A stretch of 64,000 nucleotides of DNA from Phyllobates terribilis (GCF_046119375.1 NW_027362762.1:454832001-454896000), one strand, 5' to 3'. Numbered from the stretch's first letter, positions 1 to 38,767 are shown. Numbers and translations: made by a program. The notes: generated by a model from the sequence alone, not told the origin.

Positions 1-957
1 ATGAATCTCCTGTAGTAGCCTACCCGCCCGAGGAACTGCCGCACTTCCTTGATAGTGGAGGGTCTTGGCCAGTCCTTGATCACAGTGAATTTTTCAGGGT
101 CTGGTGCTTACCACATGAACTAGGTACTTGCACCTTGGGCTTCAAAAGGTGGCACTAGGACGGCTTTACTTTCAGGTCATAATCAGATAGGGCTTCGAAC
201 ACCTCGGACAGGTGCTCCAGGTGGTCTTCATATGTCTTTGAGTAGACGATTACATCGTCAAGGTACAGCAGGACGGTTTTGAAGTTTTTGTGTCCTAGGC
301 AACACTCCATTAACCGCTGGAAGGTTCCTGGGGCGTTGTAGAGCCCGAATGGCATGCAGTTGAACTCGCTGAGGCCCATTGGTGTTGTAAACGCGGTCTT
401 TTCTCTGTCCGCCTCTGCCACAGGAACCTGCCAGTACCCACTGGTGAGATCCAAAGTGGAGAAATAGTTAGCTGATCTCAATGCTGCTAATGATTCCTCA
501 ATTCTGGGTAATGGGTAGGCGTCCTTATGTGTAATGCGGTTACTCTGCCTGTAATCAACACACATCCTCATTGTACCATCCTTCTTTCTAACGAGAACTA
601 ATGGAGCTGCCCAGGGGCTACAACTATCTCTGATCACCCCAGCCTCCTTCATCTCCCGTAACATTCCTTTGGCACATTGATAGTGAGCTGGGGGTACAGA
701 CCGCTACCTCTCTTTAATGGGTGGATGATCTCCCGTGGGGATATAATGTTGGACCCCTTTTACCTGCCCAAAGTCTAGTGGGTGTTTGCTGATGACTCGC
801 TCATATTCTTCGACCACCCGGTATACTCCATGCTTTTGGTGCAAAGGGGTGGAGTCAGTGCCCACTTGTAGCTTCTGACACCAATCCTCCATCTGCCCCT
901 TGGAGCCATTATCCTCCGCCGGTTTGGATGGAGGCAAGGGTTCCACTGTCTTCATTG
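1..957 (-). pseudogene. pol: Ty3/gypsy pol fragment (RT plus upstream linker) of element A; continues beyond the left window edge
   Basis: ORF 155-664 has SPWAAPLVLVRKKDG, RMCVDYR, TLDLTSGYWQ, MPFGL and YLDD motifs. It has a premature TAG at 155-157 and frameshifts, after which [28 protein letters not shown] can still be read. Confidence 0.95.
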
Positions 958-2167
958 TGTGGCGCCCCTGAGGGTTCGGTCGCCACAGAGGTATTGCATC
1001 TCATCCAGAGGTGTGGTATCTCACTCTCAAGTAAGGAAGGAGTATGGCTCAGGACCCTAACACTACATCCACTACACCACATTTCCGGGGGACAGGGCGA
1101 TAATGCTCCTACGTAGAGCACAAGTGTCCCTGATCCCTGGCTGGAGTGGGGGGAACCACCTAGAGAGGGGGAACTAGGTAGTGGATGGGTGGAGGACGTA
1201 GATCCTGGGAGCACTGGAGTAGGAAGTATAAGTATGGGAACCATCTTAGTTCAGTGTGGTCAGTCAGAGGAGGAAAGTGTCAGGATCAGGGGCTCTGTAC
1301 GAGCTCTGCTCCACAGGCAGGCCTAGTTAAGAGGCCTGAGCCTGAAAGGAGTAAAGAGAGGAAAGGGGAGGAGGAAGGCTCCAGGACAGGAACCGAAGGG
1401 ACCCTAGGGATACGTGCCGTGCAGCCACCACCCGTACGCCCGCCGCTGCCAGGAGGTAGGGGGGTCAGGCCAGAAGAAGGGAACCGGATCCCTCAACCAG
1501 CAGAGACTACAGGGCTCAACTGGGAACCGGAGGCTGCAGCACTTCAAGTACAGCAAGCCGTCCACACCAGCCACTAGGAAAGTAGCCACATAGGGCCAGG
1601 GGACGGAACACACGTCGCCCGCCAAGGCCCGAGGACACTGGACAGAGGTGCCGCTAGGTGTGAGGTACAAGGAGAATGGCCAGAGAGGACACACAGAAGG
1701 GGTCCTGAAAAGTACTCCGGAGTTACCTGAGGGTCAACCGGGCCCCACACTGTGTGAGCACAGGACGCCGTGGGCTTTTACACTGGCCCTGTAACTGGAA
1801 CTACTTAAACCGTGAGTAAAGGATCTGGGACTGCATCATGTGGACTCTGTGATCATTCTTGCACCGCGACACATTGCACCATCACCACCATCATCCATAC
1901 ACGCTGCCCTGAAGCTACACTCTTCCTATGGGGAGTTACACTGCCTTGCTGCGCATATCACCAGCTTCAGTGGACTGCTCCGCAGCGCCGGTTCCCAATA
2001 ACCGCATTCCACAGGTGGCGTAGTCGGACTATTTAAACCAGATACACATAGACTACCCCTGGTTTGACCGCCCTGGGTCACGGACCAGGTCACCACCACG
2101 GTGACTACAACCCCCAGCATCTACAAGGCCTGGCTCCGGGTATCCCCACTGCCCAGGGGGCGCGTCA
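958..2167 (+). repeat. 5' LTR of element B
   Basis: TGTGGCGCCCC...GGGGCGCGTCA; about 36 substitutions plus 2 small indels versus 7284-8498 (about 97% by manual count). Confidence 0.95.
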
Positions 2168-2171
2168 ACTT

Positions 2172-2189
2172 TGGCGTAGTCGGCAGGAT
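2172..2189 (+). promoter_or_regulatory. Primer-binding site of element B, tRNA-Ser (AGA-type 3' end)
   Basis: TGGCGTAGTCGGCAGGAT, 4 nt after the LTR end; it is the reverse complement of the vertebrate tRNA-Ser 3' end ATCCTGCCGACTACG-CCA (recalled from memory). Confidence 0.9.
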
Positions 2190-2537
2190 ACGTAACCCAC
2201 CCGTTATCATTGGGTATTGTGTGCCTAAAAGACTGTGTTTTCTACTGAATGTGGCGTCCACCCCTGAAGAACGGGCGCCATTATGAGCCAGCCAAACAAC
2301 AATCAAAGGCCACCTCCCATCGTGGGCCAGGTTCCAGAATGGCGCCAAAAGCGGGGCCCGCCCCAACCAGCAGTGATCATGCATGTGGATGTGTCCATCG
2401 ACGTGGGGGGGCTGCCCTTGGAGGTGACCGACAGCAGACTGCCCTGGAACCGCCCCTGAAAGGGGAGGGGAGGCAAGAAAACTGAGAGACAGGGTGTGGT
2501 CTGGACCAGTCGAGGCAGGCCGCACACGGGAAAGGAG

Positions 2538-3752
2538 ATGGACCGTGGCAGCTCCGGAGACCCTGCCAGCGACATGCTACAGGCCGAAGCGCCATATACC
2601 CTGGAGGAGCTGGTGGCCAAGCTCCCCTGGGAGGATGCCGAGTTCCTCCGCGCCGGCATGCAAGATCTGGGCCGGAGGATGGCCAGGGCGCAGCGAGACG
2701 CCATTGCGGACTGGAAGAGGGAGATGGAGCAAAGGATGGCGGCCCGGCAGCCAGCGATGCTGCCTAGCACCGGCGGCGCCCCAGCCTCCGAGGACCAGGA
2801 TCGTGGTCAGGATACCGCGCCTGAAGCAGGAGCGGCCGCAGGAGCAGGTAGGAGAAGTTCTCCTGTGCCGGACGCTGTAAGCGTCGACCTGCCACTGGGC
2901 CCCCTGGTGGAGTCGCAGATCCCGGGCGTCACCGAAGCTGTCCCATTCCCGACACCAGAGCCTGGCCCTTTAAACCAGGGCGAGACCGCCACATGCCTAC
3001 CATGCATATACCAGGGCGCGCCAGTTCCAAGTGCCCTCCAGACCCCGGAACCAGCTCCAGACGCCAACGACGCCGGCCCGCTCCTAGGTCCCCTGCAGGA
3101 GCCGCCCCCTCCGACACCCGAATGGGTGTATGGGTGCTTCCCCTGGGACTGGTCCGCGGAGGTGGAGGACCAGCGGCCTTCACTCCTGCCCGCTCCACAG
3201 CCCGCCGCCGCCGCTTCCCAGGTACCGGAGGATGAGGCCCAATTTGAGTGGGATAACTCAGGGGAAGATTTAATGGGGTTCTCCCAGGAGACCAGGGCAG
3301 CCGCAGCCCGCTGCAAGGAGTTCTGTTATCAACAGCTGATCAAGTTTGAAAAAGAGCGGAGACAGCGGCGTGAGCGGTGGGAGCAACTCGAGGCCAGGAA
3401 TATGGAGGAAAAGGCCCGGACCCGCCATGACAAGCGAGCGGCTCGTGGTCCCAGAATTACCGGGACCGTGGTAAAATTCAACCTGGACGCAGGATGGGGG
3501 TTCGTCTGGGACCCGCTGACAGACACGGATCTCTTTGTAAATAGAAGAGACGTGGAATCCCGCCTGCCAGAGGGACATCCAGATCGGGACCTGTATCCCG
3601 GGGACACCGTGTCCTACACCAGGCACCGAGGAGTAAGGGGCTGGTATGCCCTCAATGTCCACCGGTTGGAGACAGAGTTCCACCATGCTGAAGACCCGGC
3701 TGGGTCAGCCAGTGATGGACCAGAGCCTCCCCGCAGGGAGCACCCTTACTAA
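2538..3752 (+). CDS. Retroelement-encoded protein: helical N-terminus, Pro/Ala-rich linker, basic coiled coil, C-terminal cold-shock domain (about nt 3456-3668)
   Basis: Open frame 2496-3752; first ATG at 2538 in good context (GAGATGG), 404 aa. The segment TGTVVKFNLDAGWGFV..DLFVN..LYPGDTVSYT..GVRGWYALNVHRL aligns by eye with CspA TGIVKWFNADKGFGFI..DVFVH..LDEGQKVSFT..GAKGPAAGNVTSL. Confidence 0.85.
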   Translation: MDRGSSGDPASDMLQAEAPYTLEELVAKLPWEDAEFLRAGMQDLGRRMARAQRDAIADWKREMEQRMAARQPAMLPSTGGAPASEDQDRGQDTAPEAGAAAGAGRRSSPVPDAVSVDLPLGPLVESQIPGVTEAVPFPTPEPGPLNQGETATCLPCIYQGAPVPSALQTPEPAPDANDAGPLLGPLQEPPPPTPEWVYGCFPWDWSAEVEDQRPSLLPAPQPAAAASQVPEDEAQFEWDNSGEDLMGFSQETRAAAARCKEFCYQQLIKFEKERRQRRERWEQLEARNMEEKARTRHDKRAARGPRITGTVVKFNLDAGWGFVWDPLTDTDLFVNRRDVESRLPEGHPDRDLYPGDTVSYTRHRGVRGWYALNVHRLETEFHHAEDPAGSASDGPEPPRREHPY

Positions 3753-4547
3753 GTACTGTAAGAGGAACTGAGCATTTAGGATGTAAATAAGTTACCCGTC
3801 AGGGTATGCAGGGACACTGCAAAAAGTTTGTTGTTTACCAGGTTGCCCGAAAGGATGCAGTTCTACGTTGAAAAACTTGTGAGTGTTCATTAGTTACCCG
3901 GAACGGGTCCAAAGACTAACCGGCTGAGGACTGGGAGCAGCCGCTTTTTGTAAATAGTTGCACCTCTTAAGGTGCCCCTTATTGGTTTTATAAGAACTTC
4001 AACGAGTACCTCAGAACAAAAACCCGTTGGAGGTGGCCGAAGACGAGGTCCAGCACCTGCTTCATCTAAGCCCTGCAGCCACCCCAGGGCCTCCGTTGAG
4101 GGTTTGGGATGGGTCCCTCATATTCGTGTTTGCAAGTTTGCACTTTATTGAAAAATGGACATCTGGTTGCAGACATCACTGTGACCGGTTGACCAAAAGT
4201 TTACTTGAAAAGTTTATGTGAAAATTGTTTTTGATATGACAAATGGCAAAATATGAAGAATGTTTATGACGGAAATGTTTTATACGCAAAGGAAATGTTT
4301 ATAATGTCTTATATATAAAGTACAGACCAAAAGTTTGGACACACCTTCTCATTTAAAGATTTTTCTGTATTTTCATGACTATGAAAATTGTACATTCACA
4401 CTGAAGGCATCAAAACTATGAATTAACACATGTGGAACTATATATTTAGCAAAAAAGTGTGAAACAACTGAAAATATGTCTTATATTCTAGGTTCTTCAA
4501 AGTAGCTACCTTTTGCTTTGATGACTGCTTTGCACACTCTTGGCATT

Positions 4548-4659
4548 TGTAGCGCCCCGAGGGCTTGGTTGCTACAGGAGTATTGCACCTCACCCAGAGG
4601 TGTGATATTCCACTCCCAGGTAAGGATGGAGTGTGGACCAGGGCTCAGTTAGCTGCATG

Positions 4660-4690
<31 letters not shown>

Positions 4691-5833
4691 CATTTCCGGG
4701 GGACAGCTCGACGGTGCTCCCAGCTGCGGGCACAACTGACCATGTCCCTGGCTGGAGTGGGGAGGAGGGAAGAGAACCCAGTGGTGTAGGAGCAGAAAGG
4801 GGGCGGTTTCTGGAGCATAGGAAGGAGCTCATTGGGTGCAGGTCACCTGAGCTCAGACACAGAGAAGCAGATAAATGGTGGGGGCCATCTTGGAGAGTAG
4901 TTCAGTCAGAGGAGAAGAAAGAGAGAGCTGACAGGGAGCAGCGGCTCAGGCTGAGCTCAGCTCCACGAGGCAGGCCTAGAGAAAAGGCCGGGGCCAGAGA
5001 GGAGAAGAGAAGAAGGAGAAGGAAGGAAGGAGAAGAGACAGAGGAGTGGAAGGGCTCCAGAAACAAGAAGGCAGAAGGGACCCTAAGAGTGCAGAATGGC
5101 CAGCAACCGTTGCATACCCCATTATATCGGGTGGAAGGGTCAGGCTGTGAAAAGGTACCGGATCCCTAAGTTGGTGGAGGCGAATCTACCCTCAGCCAAG
5201 AACCGGAGGTTGTGACCATTTATTGGTGCGAACCCCCCGCTAAACCTGCTAGGAAGGCACCATATAGGATAGCGGGAAGTGAAGGCCAACGCTTACCCGA
5301 CACGGTCCGCGGTAGCTGGACAGAAGTCAGGACACTGGTGGGGCACGAGAGGCCAGAGAAAGGACAGAAGGGGGTCCTGTGCCATACTCCTGAATTGCCT
5401 GGGGGTTGACCGAGCTCCTCACCTGGTGGACGCAGCACGGCTCGGGCAGTCCTTGCTGACAGAAGTGACTTGGATAACAACTGTGAGTAAAAGACCCTGG
5501 ACTGCATCATTGGACTCTGTGTGATTTCTGCTGCGCCTGCACCATCACCCCCAGCATCCACTTACACTGCCCTGAGGCTACACTCTTCCCATGGGGAGTT
5601 ATCCTACCCCTGTGCTGCACACCAACATCAGCCTCAGCGGTCTGCCTCGCAGCGGCGGTTATCTCTGACCGCAATCCACGGGTGGCGTAGTCGGACATTC
5701 AAAACACTGATAAATAGACTGCCACAACATTGGTCTGACCACCCTGAGCCACGGGATCGGGTTGCCACTACTATCCCCAGCATTGTACAGAAGCCCGGTT
5801 CCGGGTACCCCACGGCCCAGGGGGCGAGTTACA
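4548..5833 (+). repeat. Solo LTR C (relative of the B LTR) inserted in the Tc1 TIR; contains a (CA)n tract at about 4659-4687
   Basis: TGTAGCGCCCC...GGGGCGAGTTACA, co-linear with the B LTR. The opposite TIR gives the empty site GGCATTCTCTTG. TSD CATT overlaps the terminal CA (2-bp ambiguity). Confidence 0.85.
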
Positions 5834-6648
5834 TTCTCTTGATGAGCTTCAAGAGGTAGTCACCGAAAATGGTCTTCCAACAATCTTGAAGGAGTTCCCA
5901 GAGATGCTTAGCACTTGTTGGCCCTTTTGCCTTCACTCTGCGGTCCAGCTCACCCCAAACCATCTCGATTGGGTTCAGGTCTGGTGAATGTGGAGGCCAG
6001 GTCATTTGGCATAGCACCCCATCACTCTTCCTCTTGGTCAAATAGCCCTTACACAGCCTGGAGTTGTGTTTAGGATCATTGTCCTGTAGAAAAATAAATG
6101 ATGGTCCAACTAAACGCAAACCGGATGGAATAGCATGCCGCTGCAAGATGCTGTGATAGCCATGCTGGTTCAGTATGCCTTCAATTTTGAATAAATCCCC
6201 AACAGTGTCACCAGCAAAACACCCCCACACCATCACACCTCCTCCTCCATGCTTCACGGTGGGAACCAGGCATGTAGAGTCCATCCGTTCACCTTTTCTG
6301 CGTCGCACAAAGACACTGTGGTTGGAACCAAAGATCTCAAATTTGGACTCATCAGACCAAAGCCCAGATTTCCACTGGTCTAATGTCTATTCCTTGTGTT
6401 CTTTAGCCCAAACAAGTCTCTTCTGCTTGATGCCTGTCCTTAGCAGTGGTTTCCTAGCAGACTCTTGGTCTTCCTTTCCTGGGGCGGTCCTCATGTGAGC
6501 CAGTTTCTTTGTAGCGCTTGATGGTTTTTGCAACTGCACTTGGGGACATTTTCAAAGGTTGCCCAATTTTTCGGACTGACTGACCTTCATTTCTTAAAGT
6601 AATGATGGCCACTCATTTTTCTTTACTTAGCTGCTTTTTTCTTGCCAT
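5829..6648 (-). pseudogene. DD38E transposase remnant
   Basis: MARKKQLSKEK* at the N-terminus, then GRPR, an internal deletion, WSDESK, KHGGGGVMVWGC and QDNDPKH..SPDLNPIE. The C-terminus is split by solo LTR C and ends near 4479. Confidence 0.9.
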
Positions 6649-7267
6649 AATACAAATTCTAACAGTCTATTCAGTAGGACTATCAGCTGTGTATCCACCA
6701 GACTTCTGCACAACACAACTGATGGTCCTGGCCCCATTTATAAGGCAAGAAATCCCACTTATTAAACCTGACAGGGCACACCTGTGAAGTGAAAACCATT
6801 TCCGGTGACTACCTCTTGAAGCTCATCAAGAGAATGCCAAGAGTGTGCAAAGCAGTCATCAAAGCAAAAGGTGGCTACTTTGAAGAACCTAGAATATAAG
6901 ACATATTTTCAGTTGTTTCACACTTTTTTGTTAAGTATATAATTCCACATGTGTTAATTCATAGTTTTGATGCCTTCAGTGTGAATGTACAATTTTCTTA
7001 GTCAAGAAAATACAGAAAAATCTTTAAATGAGAAGGTGTGTCCAAACTTTTGGTCTGTACTGTATATGTGAAGAAATGTTTTATAACATGTGAAGAAAGT
7101 GTTTATAATGTTTTGGTAAATGAAATGTAACCAGTAACGTTAAAAGAAGTATGCCTCCCATAAAGGGAAGATGTGTTGTTTACAATCTTATATGCGGACA
7201 TGTCCTAAAATTTTGTATGTCTTTTGAAATTGTCTTTTACTCTGTTCCAGCCCGCGGACGTGCTGTG

Positions 7268-7283
7268 TTTTACCAGGGGGGTG
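7268..7283 (+). promoter_or_regulatory. Polypurine-tract region of element B
   Basis: TTTTACCAGGGGGGTG abutting the 3' LTR; the equivalent in element D reads TTTTACTACGGGGGAA (minus strand, 12683-12698). Confidence 0.7.
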
Positions 7284-8498
7284 TGTGGTGCCCCTGAGGG
7301 TTCGGTCGCCACAGAGGTATTGCATCTCATCCAGAGGTGTGGTATCTCACTCTTAGGTAAGGAAGGAATATGGCTCAGGACCCTAACACTACATCCACTA
7401 CACCACATTTCCGGGGGACAGGACGATAATGCTCCTACATAGAGCACAAGTGTCCCTGATCCCTGCCTGGCTGGAGTGGGGGGAACCACCTAGAGAGGGG
7501 GAACTAGGTAGTGGATGGGTGGAGGACGTAGATCCTGGGAGCACTGGAGTAGGAAGTATAAGTATGGGAACCATCTTAGTTCAGTGTGGTCAGTCAGAGG
7601 AGGAAAGTGTCAGGAGCAGGGGCTCTGTACGAGCTCTGCTCCACAGGCAGGCCTAGTTAAGAGGCCTGAGCCTGAAAGGAGTAAAGAGAGGAAAGGGGAG
7701 GAGGAAGGCTCCAGGACAGGAACCAAAGGGACCCTAGGGGTACGGGCCGTGCAGCCGCCACCCGTACGCCCGCCGCTGCCAGGAGGTAGGGGGGTCAGGC
7801 CAGAAGAAGGGAACCGGATCCCTCAACCAGCAGAGACTACAGGGCTCAACTGGGAACCGGAGGCTGCAGCACTTCAAGTACAGCAAGCCGTCCACACCAG
7901 CTACTAGGAAAGTAGCCACATAGGGCCAGGGGAGGGAACACACGTTGCCTGCCAAGGCCCGAGGACATTGGACAGAGGTGCCGCTAAGTGTGAGGTACAA
8001 GGAGAGAGGCCAGAGAGGACACACAGAAGGGGGTCCTGAAAAGTACTCCGGAGTTACCTGAGGGTCAACCGGGCCCCACACTGCGTGAGCACAGGACGCC
8101 GTGGGATTTTACACTGGCCCTGTAACTGGAACTACTTAAACCGTGAGTAAAGGATCTGGGACTGCATCGTGTGAACTCTGTGATCATTCTTGCACCGCGA
8201 CACATTGCACCATCACCACCATCATCCATACACGCTGCCCTGAAGCTACACTCTTCCTGTGGGGAGGTACACTACCTTGCTTCGCATATCACCAGCTTCA
8301 GTGGACTGCTCCGCAGCGGCGGTTCCCAATAACCGCATTCCACAGGTGGCGTAGTCGGACTATTTAAACCAGATACACATAGACAACACCTGGTTTGACC
8401 GCCCTGGGTCACGGACCGGGTCACTGCCACGGTGACTACAACCCCCAGCATCTACAAGGCCCGGCTCTGGGTATCCCCACTGCCCAGGGGGCGCATCA
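7284..8498 (+). repeat. 3' LTR of element B
   Basis: Direct repeat of 958-2167; followed by TSD ATTG. Confidence 0.95.
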
Positions 8499-8502
8499 AT
8501 TG

Positions 8503-10257
8503 CGTTGTTACTGACAGTGAATAGCTTAGCAAAGGTAGCATACCGGGGTAAATGGACCTCTTTCTCCACACAATTCAGGATGCGTATCGGTACTCTCCCC
8601 TTGCGGACATCAACTACCCCCCTTGCTGTCAAGATGGTGGGCCTACTGTCAGAGTACACGGGTTCTACCAGGGCCTGATAATTTTGACCCCTGAGACCTA
8701 TTGCTGCCCGACACCATATTATCATTTCACTCCTAGGGGGCATTGCAATGGGGAATGGATCACTCATCCTGACACTGCCAATTTCTCCACCAGACAGCTC
8801 TACCTGTTGTCTTTTCATCAGGGCTCTGATTTCCATCTGTAGAACTCGCTGCTGACTGGAACTGGCAGTCTCTGCAACAAAACAATTTCTCCAAGACAAT
8901 TTTCTATCACATTGGTGCCTAAGGTTATCATAGGATGACTGTCTCAGGGATCAATATCAACAATAATCATTCCTTGTGATGGCAATTCTACTCGGCCAAC
9001 TTTTATGGTCACCTGTTTATACCCCACCTGAGGCAAGGGCTGACCATTGCTGGCATAGATGCTAAGATGTTCATCTTGACTGCTGGTAATGTCTGAGTCA
9101 GTCTAGTATAGTTTATAAAGGATATATGGCATCGTTGTCACCTGGGACCCAGTGTCCAGCAGTGCGTTCATCGGGATGCCATCAAGCACGACAGGCAGGA
9201 CCGGTCGTCCTCCCACGTGCTTGTCTCGCCAGTTTTGTGGGCCTGGTCGTCTTACTCCTGCGGGGTTGACCCACTGCCCCAGGGGTTGCTCGTTTAAATT
9301 GCAGAATCTTGTGATGTGCCCCGCCTTTTGACAGCGGCGACAGATGGGTTGTCCGTTCTGGTCTTAGCGATCGCTGTTTCTCCCTCTGGTCGGTGGAATC
9401 TTTCTCTGCCGTCGCCACGGGACATCATCTGGACTGGAAACCAGCTGGATCTTTTCCTTTGGAGACACTTGCATGGCCTGCACAGTTTTGGTTAGTGTAG
9501 CCATACTTTTTGTCAGCTCCTGGACCTGAAGGCGTAGGTCCGCAGATGGATCATTATCTAGGGTCTGCGCGTCAGCCCCCACAGGTGCTGGGGAAAAGGA
9601 CGCCACCTCCTGGTGGTATGTGATAGCTGGGCGCTGGAGGGATGCAGTGCCACCTGGGGTTGGTTCTCGTAGCACCCGGATGGCTCGGTCTTTAAATTGC
9701 GCAAAGTCCAGATCAGGGTTTTGCAGAGCCATAATGCGCAGCTGTATCCGGTGAGAGTTAGACAGGAGCCCCTCAATAAACTGCTCAGTTAGCAATCTGT
9801 CCTCGTCTTACACACTGTCAGGGTCTACCTGTTTAATGGCCCGCAGCGCCTCCTGCAGGTTTAGAGCATAGTCCCGTACACTGTCCTGCACCCTTTGTTT
9901 GCACCTGTAGAACTTCATTTTAATCTCTGCTGCTGTGCGGGTGTCAAAGGTATCCTTCAACCGGGCCAGTATTTCCTTAACAGTGCCTTTGTCCCTGCCC
10001 GGCCAGGACTTCACCTCTCTCTGGGCTGCATCGATTAGCTGGCCTATGAGGATACTGACTTTTTGCTCCTCAGACAGGGGGTACACTTTAAACAAACTGC
10101 GCAGTCTCTCCTCAAAGTCGGTCAGGGTGCTTGACTCCCCTGAGTACTGGGGCAACCACGCCGCCCCTGGTATATATGGCATTGATAACGGCATTACAGT
10201 GGCGGCTGCCGGGCCCGCAGCTAGATCCTCTCCCAGGTTGGGCATCTTCCTCCCCAC
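8503..10257 (-). pseudogene. gag: Element A gag (PNMA-like, CCHC knuckle), protease and PR-RT linker
   Basis: MPYIPGAAWLPQYSG gag start region; in-frame stops at 9808 and 9364; knuckle CRRCQKAGHITRFC; slippery TTTAAAC at 9292-9298; protease LLDTGSQVT near 9148-9156. Confidence 0.9.
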
Positions 10258-10710
10258 TAGTGAACCTCAGCCAGGTCCTGGGTTTCTGCTGATGTACCAG
10301 TCTGCTGCTCTGCAGGTCACTGTACAGCTGCACTCTTGCTGCACAGCTTCTCACACTTGTATTGTATTCACAGAACTGCAGCAGCTGGGTGGATGGGATC
10401 ACACAGCACAGAGCTTCATCAGCTGGGATGGATGGATGGGATCACACAGCCCTCTGCAGGGGGAGGCAACAATCTCCCCCCTCAGTCTGATGCAAAGGGG
10501 AAGGCTGGCACCTTTCAGCCTGAGTGACAGACAACTCTGGTACAGTCTATGCAAGTGGGAGGGGCCTATTTTGACACCGATTCTGAGGCTCCTCCCACGA
10601 TGGGACACCCCACATATCATTAACTCCGCATGTGCTACAGTAATGGCTGCAGTTTATACAGTTATACACAGTCTTTGTGGCACACAGGACCCGGTTATAT
10701 CGGGCTTCGT

Positions 10711-10730
10711 GAATCCTGTTCGTGACGCCA
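10711..10730 (-). promoter_or_regulatory. PBS of element A, tRNA-Ser (CGA-type 3' end)
   Basis: The minus strand reads TGGCGTCACGAACAGGATTC, complementary to the tRNA-Ser 3' end GAATCCTGTTCGTGACG-CCA (recalled from memory). Confidence 0.85.
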
Positions 10731-11581
10731 AGTACTCCCTGGGCCGTGGGGTACTCGGTAGCCGGGCCGGTCAATAAAAGGGGTTTTAAAGAAAAGGGAA
10801 TAGCGTTTCTATATATAATGTTCGTGACGCTACCTGTGGTATGCGGCTATATGGAGCCGGCGCTGCGGTGCAGATCCTCTGGAGCTGATGATGACGCAGC
10901 AGAGTTGGCTCAGCTCTCCACAGGCAGAGCTTAGTTCCAGGGCAGGAAGTGGTGATGTTATAGATGTTGCTGTGCAGTGTAGTGCAGGGGATGGGGGAGA
11001 TAATGACCAGTCCACAACTTAATGGTGGTTTCCTCTTACCTTTACTTGCGGTGGTTAGGCAGACCGGGGCACGGGTACTAGCTGGTAGTAGAGGTCCAGG
11101 CGGCCTGGAAGCAAGTTGGGAATCCACCCTGCCAGGTGAAGTTGTAGGCCTTCCCTTTGCGCTAATCTCTTTGGCCCTGGTGCTTATAGCTGTGCTGCGG
11201 CCCTCGTCCCTGAGTAAAACGTCTTTGTGCTCACCCATATGGCAGGCAGATCGGGCCTTCCTGGAGTGTCGCTCCCACGTGGCGGTGCTGGGCCCTATGT
11301 GCTGCTGAGCTTCTGGGCGTCTGATGGGGCCAGGAGACTTGCAGTCTCCTGCTTCCGGTTTCTGCTGCTGGGCCTTCAGTGCCCCACAACGTCGGACTCC
11401 GGTGTCCAGTTCTTCTGCGCTTCCCTCTGGGGTGAACTGCCCTGCAGCTCGACTCCCCAGGTCTTTCTTCGTCGCTGTCCTGTATTCAACTCCTCTCACT
11501 AACTCTTACTAACCCCGCCTCCAGATTCCAGTTGCTAAGGGGAGGAGCTCCACTTGCTGGTCTGGAGCCAGGAAAGTGTTG
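10731..11581 (-). repeat. 5' LTR of element A; U5 terminus damaged and U3 head interrupted by element D
   Basis: Co-linear with LTR D (CCCTGGGCCGTGGGGTACTCGG..GTTCGTGACG..CCTGTGG). It lacks the terminal GGCGCGTCA and breaks at 11581. Confidence 0.8.
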
Positions 11582-12682
11582 TGACGCGCCCCCTGGGCCG
11601 TGGGGTACTCGGCAGCCGGGCCTCTTACGGATGCCGGTATGGGGAATATCACGGTGGCTGGCCCGGGCCGTGACCCAGGGCGGTCAGTAAAAAGGGGGAT
11701 TTGATAGGGGATTTGGAAAGTTCGTGACGCCACCTGTGGAATGCGGCCTATGGGAGCCGCCGCTGCGGAGCAGTCCTCTGGAGCTGGTGTTACGGCAGCA
11801 GGAATGATGTGGCTCTCCACAGGTAGAGCTAGCTCCAGGGCAGTGTAGGGGTAGATGGTGGATGCTGGGGAGAGACGGCAGGATGGTCCCGGAGGAAAGA
11901 CGGACACTCACACGGGGGTAAGCTTCAGTGCCTTTACTGGTGATGTTGCAGGCATGGTCCAGGGTACTCCGGGCGAAGGGCGCACTTCTGGACTCTCCCC
12001 AGTGAGCGGGTATATGGCCTCCTGATCCGTGGCTTTACTCACTAAGCTTCTGGCCTGCCTGGAGCTAGGCCTAGCTTGGTTACTGTCTCTCTTTGCACCT
12101 GCTGACCTAGTGGTAGGGCCTTCTTTTGGAAATCACTCTCCCTGTACACTGGGGCCTCCGTGTCTCCTAGCCCTGGTACTGTAGTCAGCATTAGGTAAAC
12201 CTGGGACCTGTAGTCCTCCAGGGGTTCCGGTGGTTCCTACTGGGTATAAATGCCCCTGTAGGCGTAGACCCGGTGTCCGGTATATATCTCGGGGTGAGCC
12301 TGGTATGCTCCTCTGCCCCCCTCGCTACTTCTTCCTTCTCCTCTCGCCTTTGACCCACTCAAGGTCCTCACTAGGCCTTCACACGTGCTGTAGGCCTAGG
12401 CTTGCCTAAGCACAGCAGCCAGCGCGCAGCCTCTTTGCTGCTCTCTGAGCGTCAGCACGCTCTCTACTCAACTCTGAGCTCTGTCCCTCTCTGTGTCTGA
12501 GAGACTAACTAACTCACTGAGCTGCCTGGCTCCACCCTCCCTATATATATCCCTAACGGGCTCCCTCTGCTGGTCTGAGGTGGTAGGGTGGAGGTGTGTG
12601 AATGTGTGAGGTCCTCTTGTGGAGAAGTCCATCCATGCACCCTTCTGGGTTCTGTAGCACCAATGCGCAGCAGGGTGCCACA
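11582..12682 (-). repeat. 3' LTR of element D
   Basis: The minus strand runs TGTGGCACCCTG...GGGGGCGCGTCA and is preceded by a PPT. Confidence 0.85.
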
Positions 12683-13029
12683 TTCCCCCGTAGTAAAACT
12701 CAGTACTCCTGGACTGAAGCATTTTTTTTCAAAACAGGTTAACAATAACATTTCTTCCCTTTATGGGAGGCACTTTTCTTGAACGTTACAGGTAACATTA
12801 TAATACAATAATAACAATTATGAATAACATTAAAGTTACAGCAAGTCCCGTAACCTGGTGTCCATTTCACCGAAGAAAGAACATGAGGGACCCGCCTGAA
12901 AACCCTCAACGAACGCCCTGGGCGTGGCTACAGGGCATTGGTGATCCAGGTGCTGGACCACGTCTTTGGCCACGCCAAATGGGTTTTTGTTCCGTGGTCA
13001 CTTAAGGGGCACTCCAGGGAGTGCAACTA

Positions 13030-14600
13030 CACTGTGTTCCAAATTATTATGCAAATACTATTTTCTCAGATTTTCCCAAATTACCTATATGAATTGCAGT
13101 CATTGTAATTTTCCAGTCAAATAACTATCAGAGTACAATTGAAAGGTTTTTGTACAAACTGCCTATGATAACAGTATATTTTTTAAAAAATAAAACACTC
13201 AAAACTGCACTCAAAATGCATGTTCCAAATTATTATGCACAGCAGAGTTTTCAACCTTTTCATTTTAATAAAGAACAAAAAAATGGTCATTTTTGAAATT
13301 ATAAGCATTAGCAGGTTATTACAAACTGAAATCAAACAGTTTTCAACTCAAAACTTTATTCTAGGTGATGTAACATTTGCACATAGGACCCCTTGTTGGA
13401 AAGAAGCTTCTGAACTCTCTCATTCATTGAATTTGTCAGGTTTTGGATGGTTTCTGCTTCAATTGTTTTGCATGAGGACAGAATACCCTCCCAGAGCTGT
13501 TGCTTAGATGTGAACTGCCTCCTGCCATCATAGACACTCCTTTTTATGATGCTCCAGAGGTTCTCAATGGGGTTGAGGTCAGTGGAGCATGGGGGCCACA
13601 CCATAAGTTTGTCCCCTTTTATGCCCATAGCAGCCAGAGATGCAGATGTGTTATGTGCAGCATGAGACGGGGCATTATCATGCATGAAATGATCTCGATG
13701 GTCCAGATGGATGGAGTGGAGGATGGCTGGTTGATGGACACCCCATGCAAACACGGCTACGGCGCTAACAAGGAGGAGGTGGAGTAATGTTTTGGGCTGG
13801 AATCATGGGGAGAGAGATTGTCAGCCCTTTTAGGATCCCTGAAGGGGTAAAGATGAACTCCATAATGTATGTTGAGTTTCTCAAACAGCACTTCCTTCCA
13901 TGGTTCAAGAAGAAGAACCGTGCATTCCGCAGCAAGATCATTTTCATGCATGATAATGCCCCGTCTCATGCTGCACATAACACATCTGCATCTCTGGCTG
14001 CTACGGGCATAAAAGGGGACAAACTTATGGTGTGGCCCCCATGCTCCCCTGACCTCAACCCCATTGAGAACCTCTGGAGCATCATCGAAAGGAGTGTCTA
14101 TGATGGCGGGAGGCAGTTCACATCTAAGCAACAGCTCTGGGAGGGTATTCTGTCCTCATGCAAAACAATTGAAGCAGAAATAATCCAAAACCTGACAAAT
14201 TCAATGAATGAGAGAGTTCAGAAGCTTCTTTCGAACAAGGGGTCCTATGTGCAAATGTTACATCACCTAGAATGAAGTTTTGAGTTGAAAACTGTTTGAT
14301 TTCAGTTTGTAATAACCTGCTAATGTTTATAATTTCAAAAATTACCATTTTTTTGTTCTTTATTAAAATGAAAAGGTTGAAAACTCTGCTGTGCATAATA
14401 ATTTGGAACATGCATTTTGAGTGCAGTTTGAGTGTTTTATTTTTTTAAAAATATACTGTTATCATAGGCAGTTTGTACAAAAACCTTTCAATTGTACTCT
14501 AATAGTTATTTGACTGGAAAATTACAATGACTGCAATTCATATAGGTAATTTGGGAAAATCTGAGAAAATATTATTTGCATAATAATTTGGAACACAGTG
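13030..14600 (+). mobile_element. Tc1-like DD37E (TRT-type) foldback derivative
   Basis: Termini CACTGTGTTCCAAATTATTATGCAAAT, TA on both sides. About 670-bp inverted arms (13030-13695 and 13931-14600) both encode the transposase C-terminus. 37 residues lie between HD and NPIE. Confidence 0.92.
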
Positions 14601-14764
14601 TATGTACATGACAGTTTTTGGGCTGCTCACAGTCCTCAGCTACCGAGTCCTTTATATATACCCTGACGGGTAATTAAATAAACATATGGTTAATTTCAGT
14701 TTATACAATAAACAATATTCAATACCCGACTGGGTAACTATTTACACTGTCAATGTTTCTCTAT

Positions 14765-17700
14765 CTACTCTCTATACCTGACGGGGGTCTGGCCTTTTGT
14801 GCTACGCGATGACCTACGTAGTACTGGAATGCGTGTAGTGTGGATGCTTGCGCTATTTTCCGCTCTATGTGTTAGTGGACTGCAATGAACAAATAAAGTA
14901 GCACACTGTAACACTGAGTATATAGATATGAAATATGAATAGCATAACTGCTGTAGAAAATAGAAATAAATGAAAAAAATTTTTGAAAATTTTTTTAGCG
15001 CATGTAAATATGAAGAATGGAAAATGAATAGCATTACTGCTGTAAATAAATGAGAAATCTTAGCGCATAAATTGGCCAATTCATGTGTACCTGACAGCCG
15101 CGGTAAGGCGTTTCTCGATGTCAGGACCTATCAATGTGAATACCTCTCTAAGAGACCTCCGTCTGCTTATGTATGGGAAAGACAGATCCTGATGCATTTA
15201 AAACCACCTGCGGCATGGGGGTGGGGGTGGAGTGCTCAGTCAACGCTGAATCTAGTAACAAAGAAAATGACGGCACTTCCACTACAAAAACTAGGTGTGA
15301 ACAGGTGCTTACTAAGAGCAGCTACCTCCATATATAATGAACAAATAAAGTAGCACACTGTAACACTGAGTATATAGATATGAAATATGAATAGCATAAC
15401 TGCTGTAGAAAATAGAAATAAATGAAAAAAATTTTTGAAATTTTTTTTAGCGCATGTAAATATGAAGTATGGAAAATGAATAGCATTACTGCTGTAAATA
15501 AATGAGAAATCTTAGCGCATAAATTGGCCAATTCATGTGTACCTGACAGCCGCGGTAAGGCGTTTCTCGATGTCAGGACCTATCAATGTGAATACCTCTC
15601 TAAGAGACCTCCGTCTGCTTATGTATGGGAAAGACAGATCTTAGTAAGCACCTGTTCACACCTAGTTTTTGTAGTGGAAGTGCCGTCATTTTCTTTGTTA
15701 GTGGACTGCAAGACTGCCTTGACCTCTCTACGGGACTGGCAAGTACACTGGTTACTGGGCCTGCTGGCTTTGCTTCTACTGGTGATCCATCTTCCGGGGA
15801 TTCTTCCTGAGCAGGCTCTTCCGGGGCACTTACAGGTCTTACTTGCAGTGGAGAGTCTTCTGGCTGTTGGTAGAAGTGTAGCACAGGTATTATTACCACT
15901 CCATCCAGTTGAGGCCAATCTGCCGGGAAATCTCCTAAGACGGTATGGAGCACTTCTTCTTTAGGCTCCTCCGGTACAGTGAGAGGCACTTCCTCCTGGG
16001 GCTTCAGCGGACTTGGGCACAACTTCAGATGGTCTCTTGATACCGTTGCAGTTGTTCTTCCTCCGTCTTTGCTAATTAGACAGGTTTTCCTATTGTCGAA
16101 TCTGGAATTCAACACAGTGTAAGGTTCCCTTTCCCACTGGTCGTCAAGCTTGTGGCTTCTTCTCTTTCGTTTCAGCACAACTTCTCCAAGGGTCAAGGGT
16201 TCAGCTGGTGCACTCTTGTTGTACTGTGCTTCCTGCTTATCTCTCACCCTATTTAGACTGTCTTCGACAAAGGCCTGTACTCTCCTGTACTGCTCCTGTC
16301 GGGTCACATCCCAGTCTTCAGTGGACATATCTGCTTCTGGCTCTACCACTCCAAGCTCCAGGTCCATGGGCAACTTTCCGTGTCTTGCTCTCATGAGGTA
16401 TGCTGGAGTACAAATTGGTGGAACTCGCAGGTATGTGATTGTACAGATCTACCAGGTCAGGTAGTTTGCCTGGCCACTGGTTTCTTTCTTCTAAAGGTAA
16501 GGTCTTCAATAGGTCGATGACTATGTTATTCATCTTTTCACATAACTCATTGGTTTGGGGGTGGTACGGTGTAGTCCGTATCTTCTTACACCCGTACAGA
16601 TTGCAAAACTCCTTGAAAAGCTCGGCTTCAAAGGCAGGGCCTTGATCCGTCAGCACCTTATCTGGGTATCCATGGGGCCTGCAGAGGTAGGCTTGAAACG
16701 TCCTTGCTGCAGTTTCTGCCGTCAGATCCTTGACGGGGGCTGCCACGAGGAACCGGGAGTAGTGATCCACCATGGTCAGGGCATACGAGTAGCCTGACCT
16801 GCTAGGTGACAGCTTGACGTGATCCAGAGCGACAATCTCCACGGTCTGGGTTGTCTTGATGGACTGCAGGGGTGCCTTCTGGCTGCTGTAGTGTTTTCTT
16901 CTGAGGCTACAGGGTCCACAATTCCGGCACCACCTCTCTATGGAACTCCGCATTCCAACCCAATAAAACCGATTCTTCAGGAGGGTTTCCAGCTTCTTCC
17001 AGCCAAAGTGCCCTGTTTGATCGTGGTAGGCCTCCAATACCATCTGGATGTCTGTCCTGGGCACTACGATCTGTCATACCATCTCATGGGTCCTGGGGTT
17101 AACATACCTCCGGCACAGCTTCTCTCTATAGATGAACAGCCGGCTTCTCTCATTCCACAGTTGCTTGGCTTGTGGAGGAGCGTCCTTCTCCAGGGAGGAA
17201 CCTTCCTGGGTTATCAGTTCTTTGATACGGCTGACAACCGGGTCGCTGTCCTGGGTCTCCTTCCAACTGTGATGAGGTAAAGGGTTTAGTGTCTTACCAC
17301 GATACCTCTTGGAGGTGCGCTGCTCCTGGACCATCCCATTTCTGTGGAAGGCAGGTAGCTCAATCTCCTCCAGGTCATCCACTTCTTCTTCAGTGTCCGA
17401 CTGGTGAGGCATTCTGGATAGGGCATCGGCGTTGGCGTTCTTGTGGCCTGCCCGGTACTTGATGGTGAACTGATAGTTTTACAGCCAGGCCACCCAACGC
17501 TGTTCCATGGCTCCCAACTTGGCTGTCTCTAGATGTGTCAAGGGGTTGTTGTCAGTGTAAGCCGTAAACTTACTGGAGGCCAAGTAGTGCTTGAATCGTT
17601 CAGTGATGGCCCAGACCAAGGCCAGGAACTCCAACTTGAAGGAGCTATAGTTTTCTGGATTCCTCTCGGTCGGGCGAAGCTTCCTGCTAGCATAGGCAAT

Positions 17701-19720: not shown

Positions 19721-20763
19721 GGACAGTTCCGCCCTGTGTGGCCTGCCTTCCGGCAGCGGTAGCAGATGAATTCTCCTGGAGGGTGACATTGGTCGTTGGT
19801 CCTCCCACGGGGTGGCGTTGTCCTCCTCCGGGGTGGCGTTGTCCTCCTTCTTCTCCTCATCCAGCGGACATCCTCAGGGCTGTCGGCGAGTAGGATCCTT
19901 CCTTCCGGCTCGGGCTCCGTCTGTAGCTGCAGGGTGCTCAGGACAGTGGCCAGGGTTTTACTTAACTGGCGCACTTCAGAGCGTAGGCTGTCCAGCTCGC
20001 TAGGAGGCACTGTTTGCATCTTTGTTTTAGCCGTTAATGAAGGAGCAGTGGGTGCTGCAGGCACTGGGGTTGCCCCACCCTGGTAACGCTGGATAGCAAT
20101 GTCTGTTGTTTCCAGAGGCTGCAGCCCCTTTATAGCCATGTCCTTAAGGGTGTCAAAAGTGGCATCTGGATGGTCTAAGGCCCACCACAGTACAGTTCTG
20201 CTCTCCTCCTGGGACCTCAACCCCCGGATGAACTGTTCCGTCAGCATTTTATTTTCATTTTGTATGCTGGCTGGACTAACCTGTTTCAGGGCCCGCAGGG
20301 CTTGCTGTAAGCACCAGGCATAGTCCCGTATACTGTCCTCCGGTTTCTGGACACAGTGGTAGAACCTCATCCGGAGATCCGTCTCAGTGCGGTTTTCAAA
20401 CACAGTTTGCAGTCTCTTAAAGATGATGGATACTGATTCCTGGTCTGCGGCTGGCCAGGTTTCAACTTCCCGCTCTGCGGCACCAGTCAATTGTCCCACC
20501 ACAACAGCGGCTATCTGCTTACCAGTCATAGAATACATGTCTAGCACACCGCATATTTTTCTCTTGAATCCGGACAGGGTGTCTGGTTTGCCATTATACT
20601 GGGGAAGCCATTTCGAGCCAGGGATACACGGCAGGGCCATGGGTATCAACGGGGTCATGACCCCTGCTGGTGGAGCGGCCGCTGCGGCCTGTGCAGCGCC
20701 GGGCGCAGGTTGGCCATCAGGAGCGTTAACCGGTGCTCCGGCGGCTTGCTGGTCGTCAGCCAT
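19675..20763 (-). CDS. gag: Gag of element D (PNMA-like capsid plus CCHC knuckle), open frame
   Basis: 362-aa ORF with WLPQYNG, MRFYHCVQKPEDSIRDYA and CYRCRKAGHTGRNC; slippery TTTAAAC at 19714-19720. Confidence 0.9.
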   Translation of the reverse strand: MADDQQAAGAPVNAPDGQPAPGAAQAAAAAPPAGVMTPLIPMALPCIPGSKWLPQYNGKPDTLSGFKRKICGVLDMYSMTGKQIAAVVVGQLTGAAEREVETWPAADQESVSIIFKRLQTVFENRTETDLRMRFYHCVQKPEDSIRDYAWCLQQALRALKQVSPASIQNENKMLTEQFIRGLRSQEESRTVLWWALDHPDATFDTLKDMAIKGLQPLETTDIAIQRYQGGATPVPAAPTAPSLTAKTKMQTVPPSELDSLRSEVRQLSKTLATVLSTLQLQTEPEPEGRILLADSPEDVRWMRRRRRTTPPRRRTTPPRGRTNDQCHPPGEFICYRCRKAGHTGRNCPLNEQILGPRANTQE

Positions 20764-38754: not shown

Positions 38755-38755
38755 G

Positions 38756-38765
38756 GCCCGAGCAA
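38756..38765 (-). promoter_or_regulatory. Self-priming PBS of element E
   Basis: TTGCTCGGGC, 2 nt after the LTR. It is not a TGG tRNA site; it is perfectly complementary to GCCCGAGCAA at 39700-39691, about 30 nt downstream of a TATATAAG box in the LTR. Confidence 0.8.
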
Positions 38766-38767
38766 AC

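Follow-up and report, generated by a model that had tools for sequence, protein, structure and literature searches.

A 64,000-nucleotide stretch of Phyllobates terribilis DNA (GCF_046119375.1 NW_027362762.1:454832001-454896000; hereafter the window) contains an LTR retrotransposon, about 4.8 kb long in its native form, that has lost all the usual retrotransposon genes and carries a single conserved gene for a predicted nucleic-acid-binding protein ending in a cold-shock domain (CSD) of the Y-box type. Related copies, some of them inserted very recently, occur in several poison-frog genera. We found no published description of such an element in a search that did not extend to Dfam and Repbase: no paper in the literature searched combined a cold-shock domain with LTR retrotransposon capture, and the two poison-frog TE papers do not mention it. 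A first-pass annotation of the window had described an LTR retrotransposon whose only gene is a CSD protein, and this observation was confirmed, with every described part found in place. Two details needed correction, because the nested Tc1-like transposon itself carries a solo LTR of a related family and because RNP2 lacks the canonical histidine. The coordinates of the element and of the sequences nested in it are collected in the table.

Features of the CSD-carrying LTR retrotransposon (positions counted from the first nucleotide of the window)
Feature	Position	Strand	Observation
Left target-site duplication	954-957	+	ATTG
5' LTR	958-2167	+	1,210 nt, TG...CA
Inner PBS-like copy in the LTR	2014-2029	+	GGTGGCGTAGTCGGAC, about 150 nt from the LTR end, preceded by CA; same motif at 8345-8360 in the 3' LTR
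Leader	2168-2537	+	Conserved post-PBS block GGGTAYTGTGTGCC, about 40 nt after the PBS, shared with the host Gag-Pol gypsy; leader 86% identical to the Phyllobates copy
Primer-binding site	2172-2189	+	TGGCGTAGTCGGCAGGAT, 18 nt complementary to the tRNA-Ser 3' end including CCA
Only gene	2538-3752	+	404-aa ORF from the ATG: N-terminal helix, disordered Pro-rich middle, long charged helix, C-terminal CSD
Predicted N-terminal helix	2628-2747	+	aa 31-70, pLDDT about 90; amphipathic helices at the same place in relatives
Predicted long charged helix	3285-3428	+	aa 250-297, pLDDT 88-96; possible coiled coil or single helix
Cold-shock domain	3444-3677	+	aa 303-380, five strands; GWGF (RNP1), LFVN (RNP2 without His); long, highly conserved beta3-beta4 loop EGHPDRDLYPGD
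3' untranslated region, part 1	3753-4322	+	From about 3923 onward homologous to the 3' region of a Gag-Pol gypsy in the window
Nested Tc1-like DNA transposon	4323-7057	.	TA duplication (4321-4322 and 7058-7059), long inverted ends, decayed DDE_3 transposase on the minus strand; not part of the element
Nested solo LTR of a related family	4548-5831	+	1,284 bp, in the Tc1-like element; duplication CATT at 4544-4547 and 5832-5835; not part of the element
3' untranslated region, part 2	7060-7283	+	Conserved pre-PPT block and polypurine tract AGGGGGG (7275-7281), 2 nt before the 3' LTR
3' LTR	7284-8498	+	1,215 nt
Right target-site duplication	8499-8502	+	ATTG

The structural definition of an LTR retrotransposon is satisfied by the long terminal repeats, the target duplication, the primer site and the polypurine tract. 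The two LTRs are 96.6% identical by blastn, and a global alignment gave 36 substitutions, 2 indels and a K2P distance of 0.0305. Both LTRs start with TGTGG and end with GTCA/ATCA. Removal of 958-8502 restores an uninterrupted reading frame of the minus-strand host gypsy element across the junction. The PBS, located by a pattern search, is identical to the first 18 nt of an antisense human tRNA-Ser oligonucleotide (PMC3299991), whereas a search for tRNA genes in the window and in the related loci found none. A second PBS type, TGGCGTCACGAACAGGAT, is tentatively assigned to another tRNA-Ser. The inner PBS-like copy is of the same tRNA-Ser type as the element's real PBS in five of the six CSD-element LTRs and in both Gag-Pol-type LTRs, and none was found at this position in loci L006 or L007 (see below). 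An Rfam search of positions 1-14000 gave no match.

We found no gag, protease, RT or integrase in the element. CSD was the only Pfam family on the ORF and on 8 of 9 family members, and tblastn with gag, PR, RT and IN sequences of the window found nothing inside any element. The only other ATG ORF of 60 aa or more in the internal region is a 78-aa leader ORF, which is absent from the closest copy (L002) and from most other copies, and no other conserved ORF exists in the internal regions, although the leader holds several upstream ATGs. To test a Gag origin of the N-terminal part, we compared it by blastp with four gag pieces of the window and compared the family profile with a window gag by hhalign, but neither showed similarity (hhalign probability 0.1%). 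No Retrotrans_gag, PNMA-type or zf-CCHC profile matched any member, and the AlphaFold model shows two long helices plus a barrel only instead of capsid-like helical domains.

The C-terminal domain was identified as a CSD by sequence and by predicted structure. PF00313 matched the window ORF at 28.1 bits against a cut-off of 27 (E 1.9e-6), and the best E among the matching family members was 3.3e-9. In PDB searches YB-1 was the best hit, at E 7e-4 for the single sequence, and the family profile hit YB-1/YBX2 CSDs at E 8e-9, ahead of CspA. AlphaFold predicted a five-strand barrel at 306-376 with strands at 306-315, 320-325, 330-335, 357-364 and 369-376, and the top 50 Foldseek matches in PDB were all CSDs with target-normalised TM of 0.27-0.89 (0.86 for CspA). 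Among the BFVD viral structures only phage and giant-virus CSDs matched, with no retroviral counterpart. The RNP1 GWGF motif is invariant in the family, and the RNP2 Phe is kept in all but the decayed L002 copy. However, two base-stacking positions of Y-box CSDs are replaced: the equivalent of YB-1 W65 is Lys in the window copy and K/A/D/S among members, and the equivalent of H87 is Asn in the window copy and N/T/A across the family. RNA binding may therefore be altered or weak. The most conserved segment is the beta3-beta4 loop rather than the RNP motifs, which could point to a protein-binding role. Only the domain is Y-box-like. The Ala/Pro-rich N terminus and the long C-terminal domain of alternating basic and acidic clusters of YBX1-3 are absent, the CSD being followed by only about 25 residues, and the upstream parts match nothing outside the family. 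The strand order and the long beta3-beta4 loop are the same as in YBX1/YBX2, to which the domain aligns with a single gap, but identity is only about 30%, and the protein is not an orthologue. The term Lin28-like used in the first-pass annotation does not fit, because no member has a CCHC knuckle and Lin28 did not reach E 0.01 in the family-profile search of PDB.

The organisation is a family trait. Homologues came only from dendrobatoid frogs, namely Phyllobates terribilis, Ranitomeya variabilis, R. imitator and Anomaloglossus baeobatrachus. Five further complete elements in three other species have the same LTR-PBS-CSD ORF-PPT-LTR layout, their own 4-5 bp target duplications and no gag/pol, giving six complete elements across four species with native sizes of 4.2-5.1 kb. 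The LTR identities and target duplications are 100% and ACAA for L004, 99.5% and GGCC(C) for L005, 99.8% and TAAA for L006, 99.7% and TATC for L007, and 94-97% and CATT for L002. These loci were found through annotated proteins, and intact ORFs are therefore over-represented among them. Word-indexed protein searches returned only 2-5 proteins, an exact-protein look-up of the window ORF returned no record, and a metagenome scan with the CSD alignment found no relative. A phylogeny of the helix plus CSD was unresolved apart from two pairs, and we make no claim about the order of subfamilies or about a donor.

We next asked whether the ORF is under selection. The open frame of the window copy is by itself weak evidence, as the first-pass annotation had also stated, because a neutral simulation keeps it open 18% of the time. 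However, dN/dS between the window copy and L002, a Phyllobates copy, is 0.28 (bootstrap 0.21-0.37) overall and 0.10 (0.04-0.22) in the CSD, at a dS of 0.63. This estimate rests on a single pair, since the other copies are too diverged to use. Four of five indels are multiples of three, and the CSD stays recognisable between subfamilies that are only 23-43% identical overall. The first-pass annotation had named the lack of a CSD/OB-fold hit, an ORF restricted to this copy or evolving neutrally, and prior annotation of the family with this domain as outcomes that would contradict it, and none of the three occurred, as far as could be judged without Dfam and Repbase.

The element also shares cis signals with Gag-Pol Ty3/gypsy elements in the same window. 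The TGTGGCGCCCC...GGGGGCGCGTCA LTR ends, the tRNA-Ser PBS types, the post-PBS block and the pre-PPT block, the latter aligned across six CSD elements and one Gag-Pol-type 3' end, are shared with Gag-Pol-type elements, as are the last ~380 nt before the 3' LTR. This 3' module is contiguous with a gag-PR-RT-IN element once a TA-flanked insertion is discounted. However, no helper with a closely matching LTR was found, the LTR similarity to Gag-Pol-type elements in the window being only about 74% over the last ~300 nt, and the 5' LTR of the Gag-Pol element at 15.6-20.8 kb was not found.

With moderate confidence, we interpret the feature as a helper-dependent (non-autonomous) Ty3/gypsy-type LTR retrotransposon of a family found so far only in dendrobatoid poison frogs, in which everything between a short stretch after the tRNA-Ser primer site and the last ~380 nt before the 3' LTR has been replaced by about 1.7-2 kb carrying one gene. 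Our analysis demonstrates the LTR, PBS, PPT and target-duplication anatomy, the lack of gag/pol, the recurrence of this layout in six complete elements, four of them with 99.5-100% identical LTRs, a cold-shock fold (supported by profile matches and a predicted structure) closest to Y-box CSDs, purifying selection on the ORF that is strongest on the CSD, and the cis blocks shared with Gag-Pol gypsy elements of the same genome. By contrast, the mobilisation and the function of the protein are inferences, and the evidence for mobilisation in trans is indirect only, in that six complete elements have their own target duplications, four have 99.5-100% identical LTRs and none has pol. In this view, the RNA would be packaged, reverse-transcribed from a tRNA-Ser primer and integrated by the Gag-Pol of related autonomous elements, and the element's own protein would bind single-stranded RNA, preferentially the transcript that encoded it, as a chaperone, stabiliser or packaging adaptor that raises the element's share of the helper's particles, functionally comparable to LINE-1 ORF1p or to the nucleocapsid part of Gag. 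The CSD was probably captured long ago from a host Y-box-type mRNA. As a precedent, host YB-1 assembles with MMTV Gag and viral RNA (PMC4486188). The interpretation in the first-pass annotation, a satellite retroelement mobilised in trans by Gag-Pol relatives and supplying an RNA chaperone, masking or anti-silencing protein, is thus only partly supported: trans-mobilisation fits the shared cis signals, but the proposed roles of the protein remain hypothetical. A more far-reaching reading, which we regard as tentative, is that a lineage of LTR retrotransposons replaced Gag-Pol with a host-derived Y-box-type cold-shock protein working as the element's own RNA-coating or packaging factor. Such an ORF1p-like strategy on an LTR backbone would have let a helper-dependent element persist since before the two dendrobatoid families split and stay active today in several poison-frog genera.

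Among the alternatives, all of which we consider unlikely, the one that survives best is that the protein acts mainly on the host rather than on the element's own RNA. It might mimic or antagonise Y-box proteins in germ cells or embryos, by translational masking or interference with silencing, or serve a host developmental function as reported for the BHIKHARI Gag proteins. Non-autonomous LTR elements with a single ORF and developmental roles do exist, such as Bik-1/Bik-2 (PMC12067270) and xretpos(L) (PMC4585706), and the strongly conserved loop together with the altered RNP residues could be a protein-interaction surface. However, the copies are dispersed TE insertions with different neighbouring genes, and several very different subfamilies coexist in one genome, which fits selection at the element level. 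Slightly less likely is that the CSD ORF is an accessory (env-position or extra) gene of a larger autonomous gag-pol element, with the CSD-only copies being internal-deletion derivatives or retrotransposed spliced subgenomic RNAs of that master. In locus L001 (R. variabilis) the ORF abuts a truncated 5' LTR with no PBS or leader, as expected for a deletion or splice-like junction, and the 3' module is shared with a Gag-Pol element. Against this model, all six complete elements lack gag/pol, have similar native sizes and retain the PBS, tblastn with ten family proteins found only one CSD ORF in the window and none next to any pol, and the Gag-Pol element that carries the shared 3' module has no CSD between IN and that module. 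The least likely alternative is a passive passenger, a host gene fragment transduced once as in maize Bs1 or Pack-type elements, without a role for the element and open only because the copies are young, for which the chance survival of the open frame and the disordered, poorly conserved N-terminal two-thirds could be cited, but against which stand the dN/dS values, the mostly in-frame indels and the retention of the CSD in diverged subfamilies in two frog families, several with near-identical LTRs.

Among described systems, BHIKHARI (Bik-1/Bik-2) of zebrafish and ENS-1/ERNI of chicken are non-autonomous endogenous retroviruses without pol or env that keep a single conserved protein-coding gene and occur as multi-copy families (PMC12067270), but their gene is a Gag, whereas the gene found here has no Gag similarity or fold, ends in a CSD, and sits on a Ty3/gypsy-like backbone (4-5 bp duplications, tRNA-Ser PBS) instead of an ERV. 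The Xenopus laevis elements xretpos(L), 1a11 and lambda-olt 2-1 are amphibian LTR retrotransposons with an ORF but no pol homology, present in tens to hundreds of copies (PMC4585706). The ORF of 1a11 is Gag-like, and no Xenopus protein appeared among the homologues of the CSD ORF in a search of 1.84 billion representatives, so that no sequence relationship is evident. Those elements were presumed immobile, whereas the CSD elements include copies with 100% identical LTRs. LARD/TRIM-type elements and host-gene-transducing retroelements, such as maize Bs1 and acutely transforming retroviruses, likewise retain LTRs, PBS and PPT, lose gag-pol, depend on a helper and have the internal region replaced by foreign, probably host-derived, sequence. 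However, LARDs and TRIMs are non-coding and transduced host genes are usually short-lived passengers, while the foreign ORF described here is conserved under purifying selection across genera and subfamilies. LINE-1 ORF1p offers only an analogy of architecture and proposed role, with a disordered N terminus, a long helix and an RNA-binding domain thought to coat the RNA of its own element. There is no homology, as ORF1p has an RRM plus CTD and belongs to a non-LTR element, and its trimeric coiled coil is established, whereas oligomerisation of the CSD protein is only a possibility.

The ORFs of this family are currently annotated as 'uncharacterized protein' or fused into chimeric gene models with a Harbinger transposase, a MIF4G protein or a KRAB zinc-finger protein, of which genome annotators should be aware. 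The family, in which copies with identical LTRs and intact ORFs exist, is a tractable case in the very large, TE-dominated genomes of poison frogs. Non-autonomous LTR elements are usually thought of as non-coding parasites (LARD, TRIM) or as Gag-only derivatives, whereas this family keeps a different, probably host-derived, predicted nucleic-acid-binding gene under purifying selection while, in our interpretation, depending on others for reverse transcription and integration. If the protein promotes the element's own packaging or RNA stability, it would be the first cold-shock domain we know of with a role in a retroelement life cycle, and it would show that a parasite of a parasite can evolve its own RNP factor.

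The element at 958-8498 proved to be a complete LTR retrotransposon, and the observation made in the first-pass annotation, an LTR element whose only gene encodes a cold-shock-domain (CSD) protein, was thus confirmed. The two LTRs are 96.6% identical by blastn, and their global alignment contains 26 transitions, 10 transversions and two indels, corresponding to a K2P distance of 0.0305. Both LTRs begin with TGTGG and end with GTCA or ATCA. Deleting 958-8502 restores one uninterrupted reading frame of the minus-strand gypsy element into which the element inserted. The primer-binding site (PBS), TGGCGTAGTCGGCAGGAT, lies four bases after the 5' LTR and is letter for letter the start of an antisense human tRNA-Ser oligonucleotide (PMC3299991); it is therefore the complement of the tRNA-Ser 3' end including CCA. 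The polypurine tract (PPT) lies two bases before the 3' LTR. A Tc1-like DNA transposon interrupts the 3' untranslated region and has itself been hit by a solo LTR of a related family. Without the nested DNA, the element is about 4.8 kb long. The coordinates of these and the other features are summarized in the following table.

Coordinates of the CSD element, of neighboring elements in the window and of features at related loci
Sequence	Coordinates	Strand	Feature	Details
Window	954-957		Left target duplication	ATTG
Window	958-2167		5' LTR	
Window	2014-2029 and 8345-8360		PBS-like copies inside the LTRs	About 150 nt before the LTR 3' end, right after a CA
Window	2172-2189		PBS	TGGCGTAGTCGGCAGGAT, tRNA-Ser type
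Window	2538-3752		CSD ORF	404 aa
Window	4323-7057		Tc1-like transposon	TA duplication, long inverted ends, decayed DDE_3 transposase
Window	4548-5831		Solo LTR nested in the Tc1-like transposon	1,284 nt, duplication CATT
Window	7275-7281		PPT	AGGGGGG
Window	7284-8498		3' LTR	
Window	8499-8502		Right target duplication	ATTG
Window	1-957 and 8503 to about 11580	minus	Host Ty3/gypsy element	Runs off the window start
Window	155-664	minus	RT of the host element	
Window	9364-10257	minus	gag pieces of the host element	Weak PNMA-type match
Window	10730-10713	minus	PBS of the host element	TGGCGTCACGAACAGGAT
Window	11734-11719 and about 10833-10818	minus	PBS-like copies inside the two Gag-Pol-type LTRs	
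Window	11582-13030 and 14605-20763	minus	gag-PR-RT-IN gypsy element	gag-PR-RT-IN at 15600-20763
Window	12683-11582	minus	LTR with the same ends as the CSD elements	Preceded by the pre-PPT block and G-run
Window	13031-14604		Foldback insertion	TA-flanked, 510-nt and 176-nt inverted arms
Window	14884-15635		Tandem duplication in the gag-PR-RT-IN gypsy element	452 bp
Window	about 33374-39703	minus	Young chromovirus-type Ty3/gypsy element	
Window	22.6-30.3 kb versus 41.2-49.6 kb		Long inverted matches	79-94% identical, arms up to 470 nt
Window	21.7-22.6 kb and 59.8-61.3 kb		Tandem arrays	36-bp, 39-bp and 31-bp units
L001	9521-10001 versus 13043-14090		Truncated 5' LTR joined directly to the ORF	Gene LOC143808358
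L002	3139-8220		LTR element immediately upstream of the CSD element	gag and protease matches only
L006	4776-10000		Penelope-like element in the CSD ORF	1,142-aa ORF
L006	5104-5366 equals 9984-10246		Exact duplication	263 bp

The CSD ORF is the only substantial ORF inside the element and starts from an ATG that is conserved in relatives, and the internal regions of this element and its relatives hold no other conserved ORF. Pfam identified only PF00313 (CSD) in the ORF, with 28.1 bits against a cut-off of 27, over residues 308-375. A single-sequence search of PDB sequences placed the YB-1 CSD first (E 7e-4), in an alignment with one gap through the long β3-β4 loop. A profile of nine family members raised YB-1/YBX2 to E 8e-9, ahead of CspA, while Lin28, Unr and CRHSP-24 stayed above E 0.01. 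An AlphaFold model built with the family alignment shows a confident helix at residues 31-70, a disordered stretch at about 80-245, a long confident helix at 250-297 and a five-strand barrel at 306-376. The 50 best Foldseek matches of the model in the PDB are all cold-shock domains, with target-normalized TM scores of 0.27-0.89 (0.86 for CspA), and in the viral structure library only phage and giant-virus CSDs matched. However, although GWGF (RNP1) is kept, as is the Phe of RNP2 in all but the decayed L002 copy, the position of YB-1 W65 is Lys in the window copy and varies in relatives, and the RNP2 histidine is replaced by Asn, Thr or Ala. The most conserved stretch in the family is instead the loop E-G-H-P-x-R-D-L-Y-P-G-D. 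The otherwise disordered middle also contains a short conserved motif at about residues 228-250 of the window ORF, aromatic-x-W-D/Q followed by D/N-L/F-I/M-G-F, which might be a docking motif. No similarity to Gag was detected by blastp, by profile comparison or by fold.

Protein searches found relatives only in dendrobatoid frogs, namely Phyllobates terribilis, Ranitomeya variabilis, R. imitator and Anomaloglossus baeobatrachus. All of them are named 'uncharacterized' or carry an automatic 'CSD domain-containing' label, and some are fused by gene prediction to a Harbinger transposase, a MIF4G protein or a KRAB zinc-finger protein. We examined seven of these loci (L001-L007), of which five hold complete elements with the same layout (LTR, tRNA-Ser PBS, CSD ORF, G-run PPT, LTR), their own target duplications and no gag/pol, as listed below.

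Complete CSD elements found at related loci
Locus	Species	LTR identity	Target duplication
L004	P. terribilis	100% over 1,247 nt	ACAA
L005	A. baeobatrachus	99.5%	GGCC(C)
L006	A. baeobatrachus	99.8%	TAAA
L007	R. variabilis	99.7%	TATC
L002	P. terribilis	94-97%	CATT

Native sizes are 4.2-5.1 kb. L006 measures 9.9 kb because a Penelope-like element, comprising an RT and a GIY-YIG-like module at the end of its ORF, sits in the N-terminal part of the CSD ORF; the NCBI protein model for this copy (P0008) is therefore N-terminally truncated. The element immediately upstream of the CSD element in L002 has about 99% identical LTRs but no RT or IN, so that it is a second kind of pol-less derivative, and both elements sit inside pieces of a Tc1-like element. 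L001 and L003 are decayed copies. In L001, from R. variabilis, the ORF starts directly at a truncated 5' LTR without PBS or leader, which is either a deletion or a splice-like junction. The proteins are only 23-43% identical overall between subfamilies, yet 8 of 9 still match the CSD profile, and very different subfamilies coexist in one genome. A Bufo bufo protein named 'Y-box-binding protein 2-A-like' (XP_040278526) and a Logan contig (ERR14218477), both single-CSD proteins, share a variant of the family's RNP2-loop motif, FVxRRSVKRxYLP, but have a different architecture. They may be more distant relatives, or relatives of the donor gene.

For the window copy alone, the open reading frame means little, because neutral decay at the LTR-derived rate keeps it open in about 18% of simulations. 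Between the window copy and the P. terribilis copy L002 (78% nucleotide identity), four of five indels are multiples of three, and the fifth is the single frameshift of L002. The Nei-Gojobori estimates for this pair, given below, indicate purifying selection. They rest on one pair only, and because the related loci were found through annotated proteins, the fraction of intact ORFs among them is biased upwards.

Nei-Gojobori estimates between the window copy and L002
Region	dN	dS	dN/dS	Bootstrap 95%
Whole ORF	0.176	0.633	0.28	0.21-0.37
CSD	0.084	0.828	0.10	0.04-0.22
Disordered middle (aa 81-245)	0.238	0.650	0.37	0.23-0.58

The window also holds Gag-Pol Ty3/gypsy elements of the same LTR superfamily. 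The host element into which the CSD element inserted has a PNMA/Retrotrans_gag-type gag and an RT, and its PBS, TGGCGTCACGAACAGGAT, is of the same type as in L005-L007. About 40 nt after this PBS it carries the conserved block GGGTnnTGTGTGCC, which is also present in all CSD elements. A minus-strand LTR with the same ends is preceded by the same pre-PPT block and G-run, and homology to the last ~380 internal bases of the CSD elements runs straight across the foldback insertion and continues into the 3' untranslated region of the gag-PR-RT-IN element, for which no 5' LTR was found. The CSD elements therefore look like this backbone with everything between the post-PBS block and the 3' module replaced by a leader, the CSD ORF and about 170 nt. 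However, the LTR bodies are only about 74% similar over their last ~300 nt. The PBS-like copies within LTRs of this clade, 12-14 nt long and located about 150 nt before the LTR 3' end, right after a CA, match the PBS type of the element itself (AGTCGG type or CACGAAC type); they were seen in the window element, L002, L004, L005 and both Gag-Pol-type LTRs, but not at that position in L006 or L007. This suggests that an old LTR end plus PBS was absorbed into a longer LTR, or that two priming sites are used alternately. Elsewhere in the window, the young chromovirus-type element has an intact pol ORF of 1,066 aa (PR, RT, RNase H, IN, SH3, chromodomain), a gag ORF of 316 aa and 100% identical LTR segments, and its LTRs contain 45-bp and 99-bp internal repeats. 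The many long inverted matches on either side of it look like two oppositely oriented copies of a large repeat.

Our analysis demonstrates the anatomy of the element, the absence of gag/pol, repeated recent insertion in several genera, a true CSD and purifying selection. In contrast, we infer mobilization in trans by related but as yet unidentified Gag-Pol elements, primed by tRNA-Ser, and a role for the protein in binding the element's own RNA as a chaperone, stabilizer or packaging adaptor, which would resemble LINE-1 ORF1p in architecture and the nucleocapsid in role. The participation of host YB-1 in MMTV Gag-RNA assembly (PMC4486188) makes such a role plausible. An old capture of the domain from a Y-box-type host mRNA is likewise inferred. 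The interpretation in the first-pass annotation, a satellite retroelement mobilized in trans and supplying an RNA chaperone, masking or anti-silencing protein, is partly supported. Alternative explanations, each of which we consider unlikely, are that the protein acts on the host rather than on the element, or that the ORF is an accessory gene of an undiscovered full-length element. That the ORF is a passive passenger is the least likely of the three.

The closest known systems are non-autonomous vertebrate LTR elements with a single ORF, namely BHIKHARI Bik-1/2 and ENS-1/ERNI, which are Gag-only (PMC12067270), and xretpos(L) and 1a11 of Xenopus, which lack pol homology (PMC4585706). LARD/TRIM elements and host-gene-transducing retroelements are also relevant. 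None of these is reported to carry a CSD. Full-text literature searches, which did not extend to Dfam and Repbase, found no paper linking a cold-shock domain to an LTR retrotransposon gene, and the poison-frog TE papers do not mention it. While LTR elements with a single ORF and without pol are already known, on present evidence this family appears to be a long-lived and currently active retroelement, inferred to be helper-dependent, that maintains a non-Gag gene for a putative nucleic-acid-binding protein.
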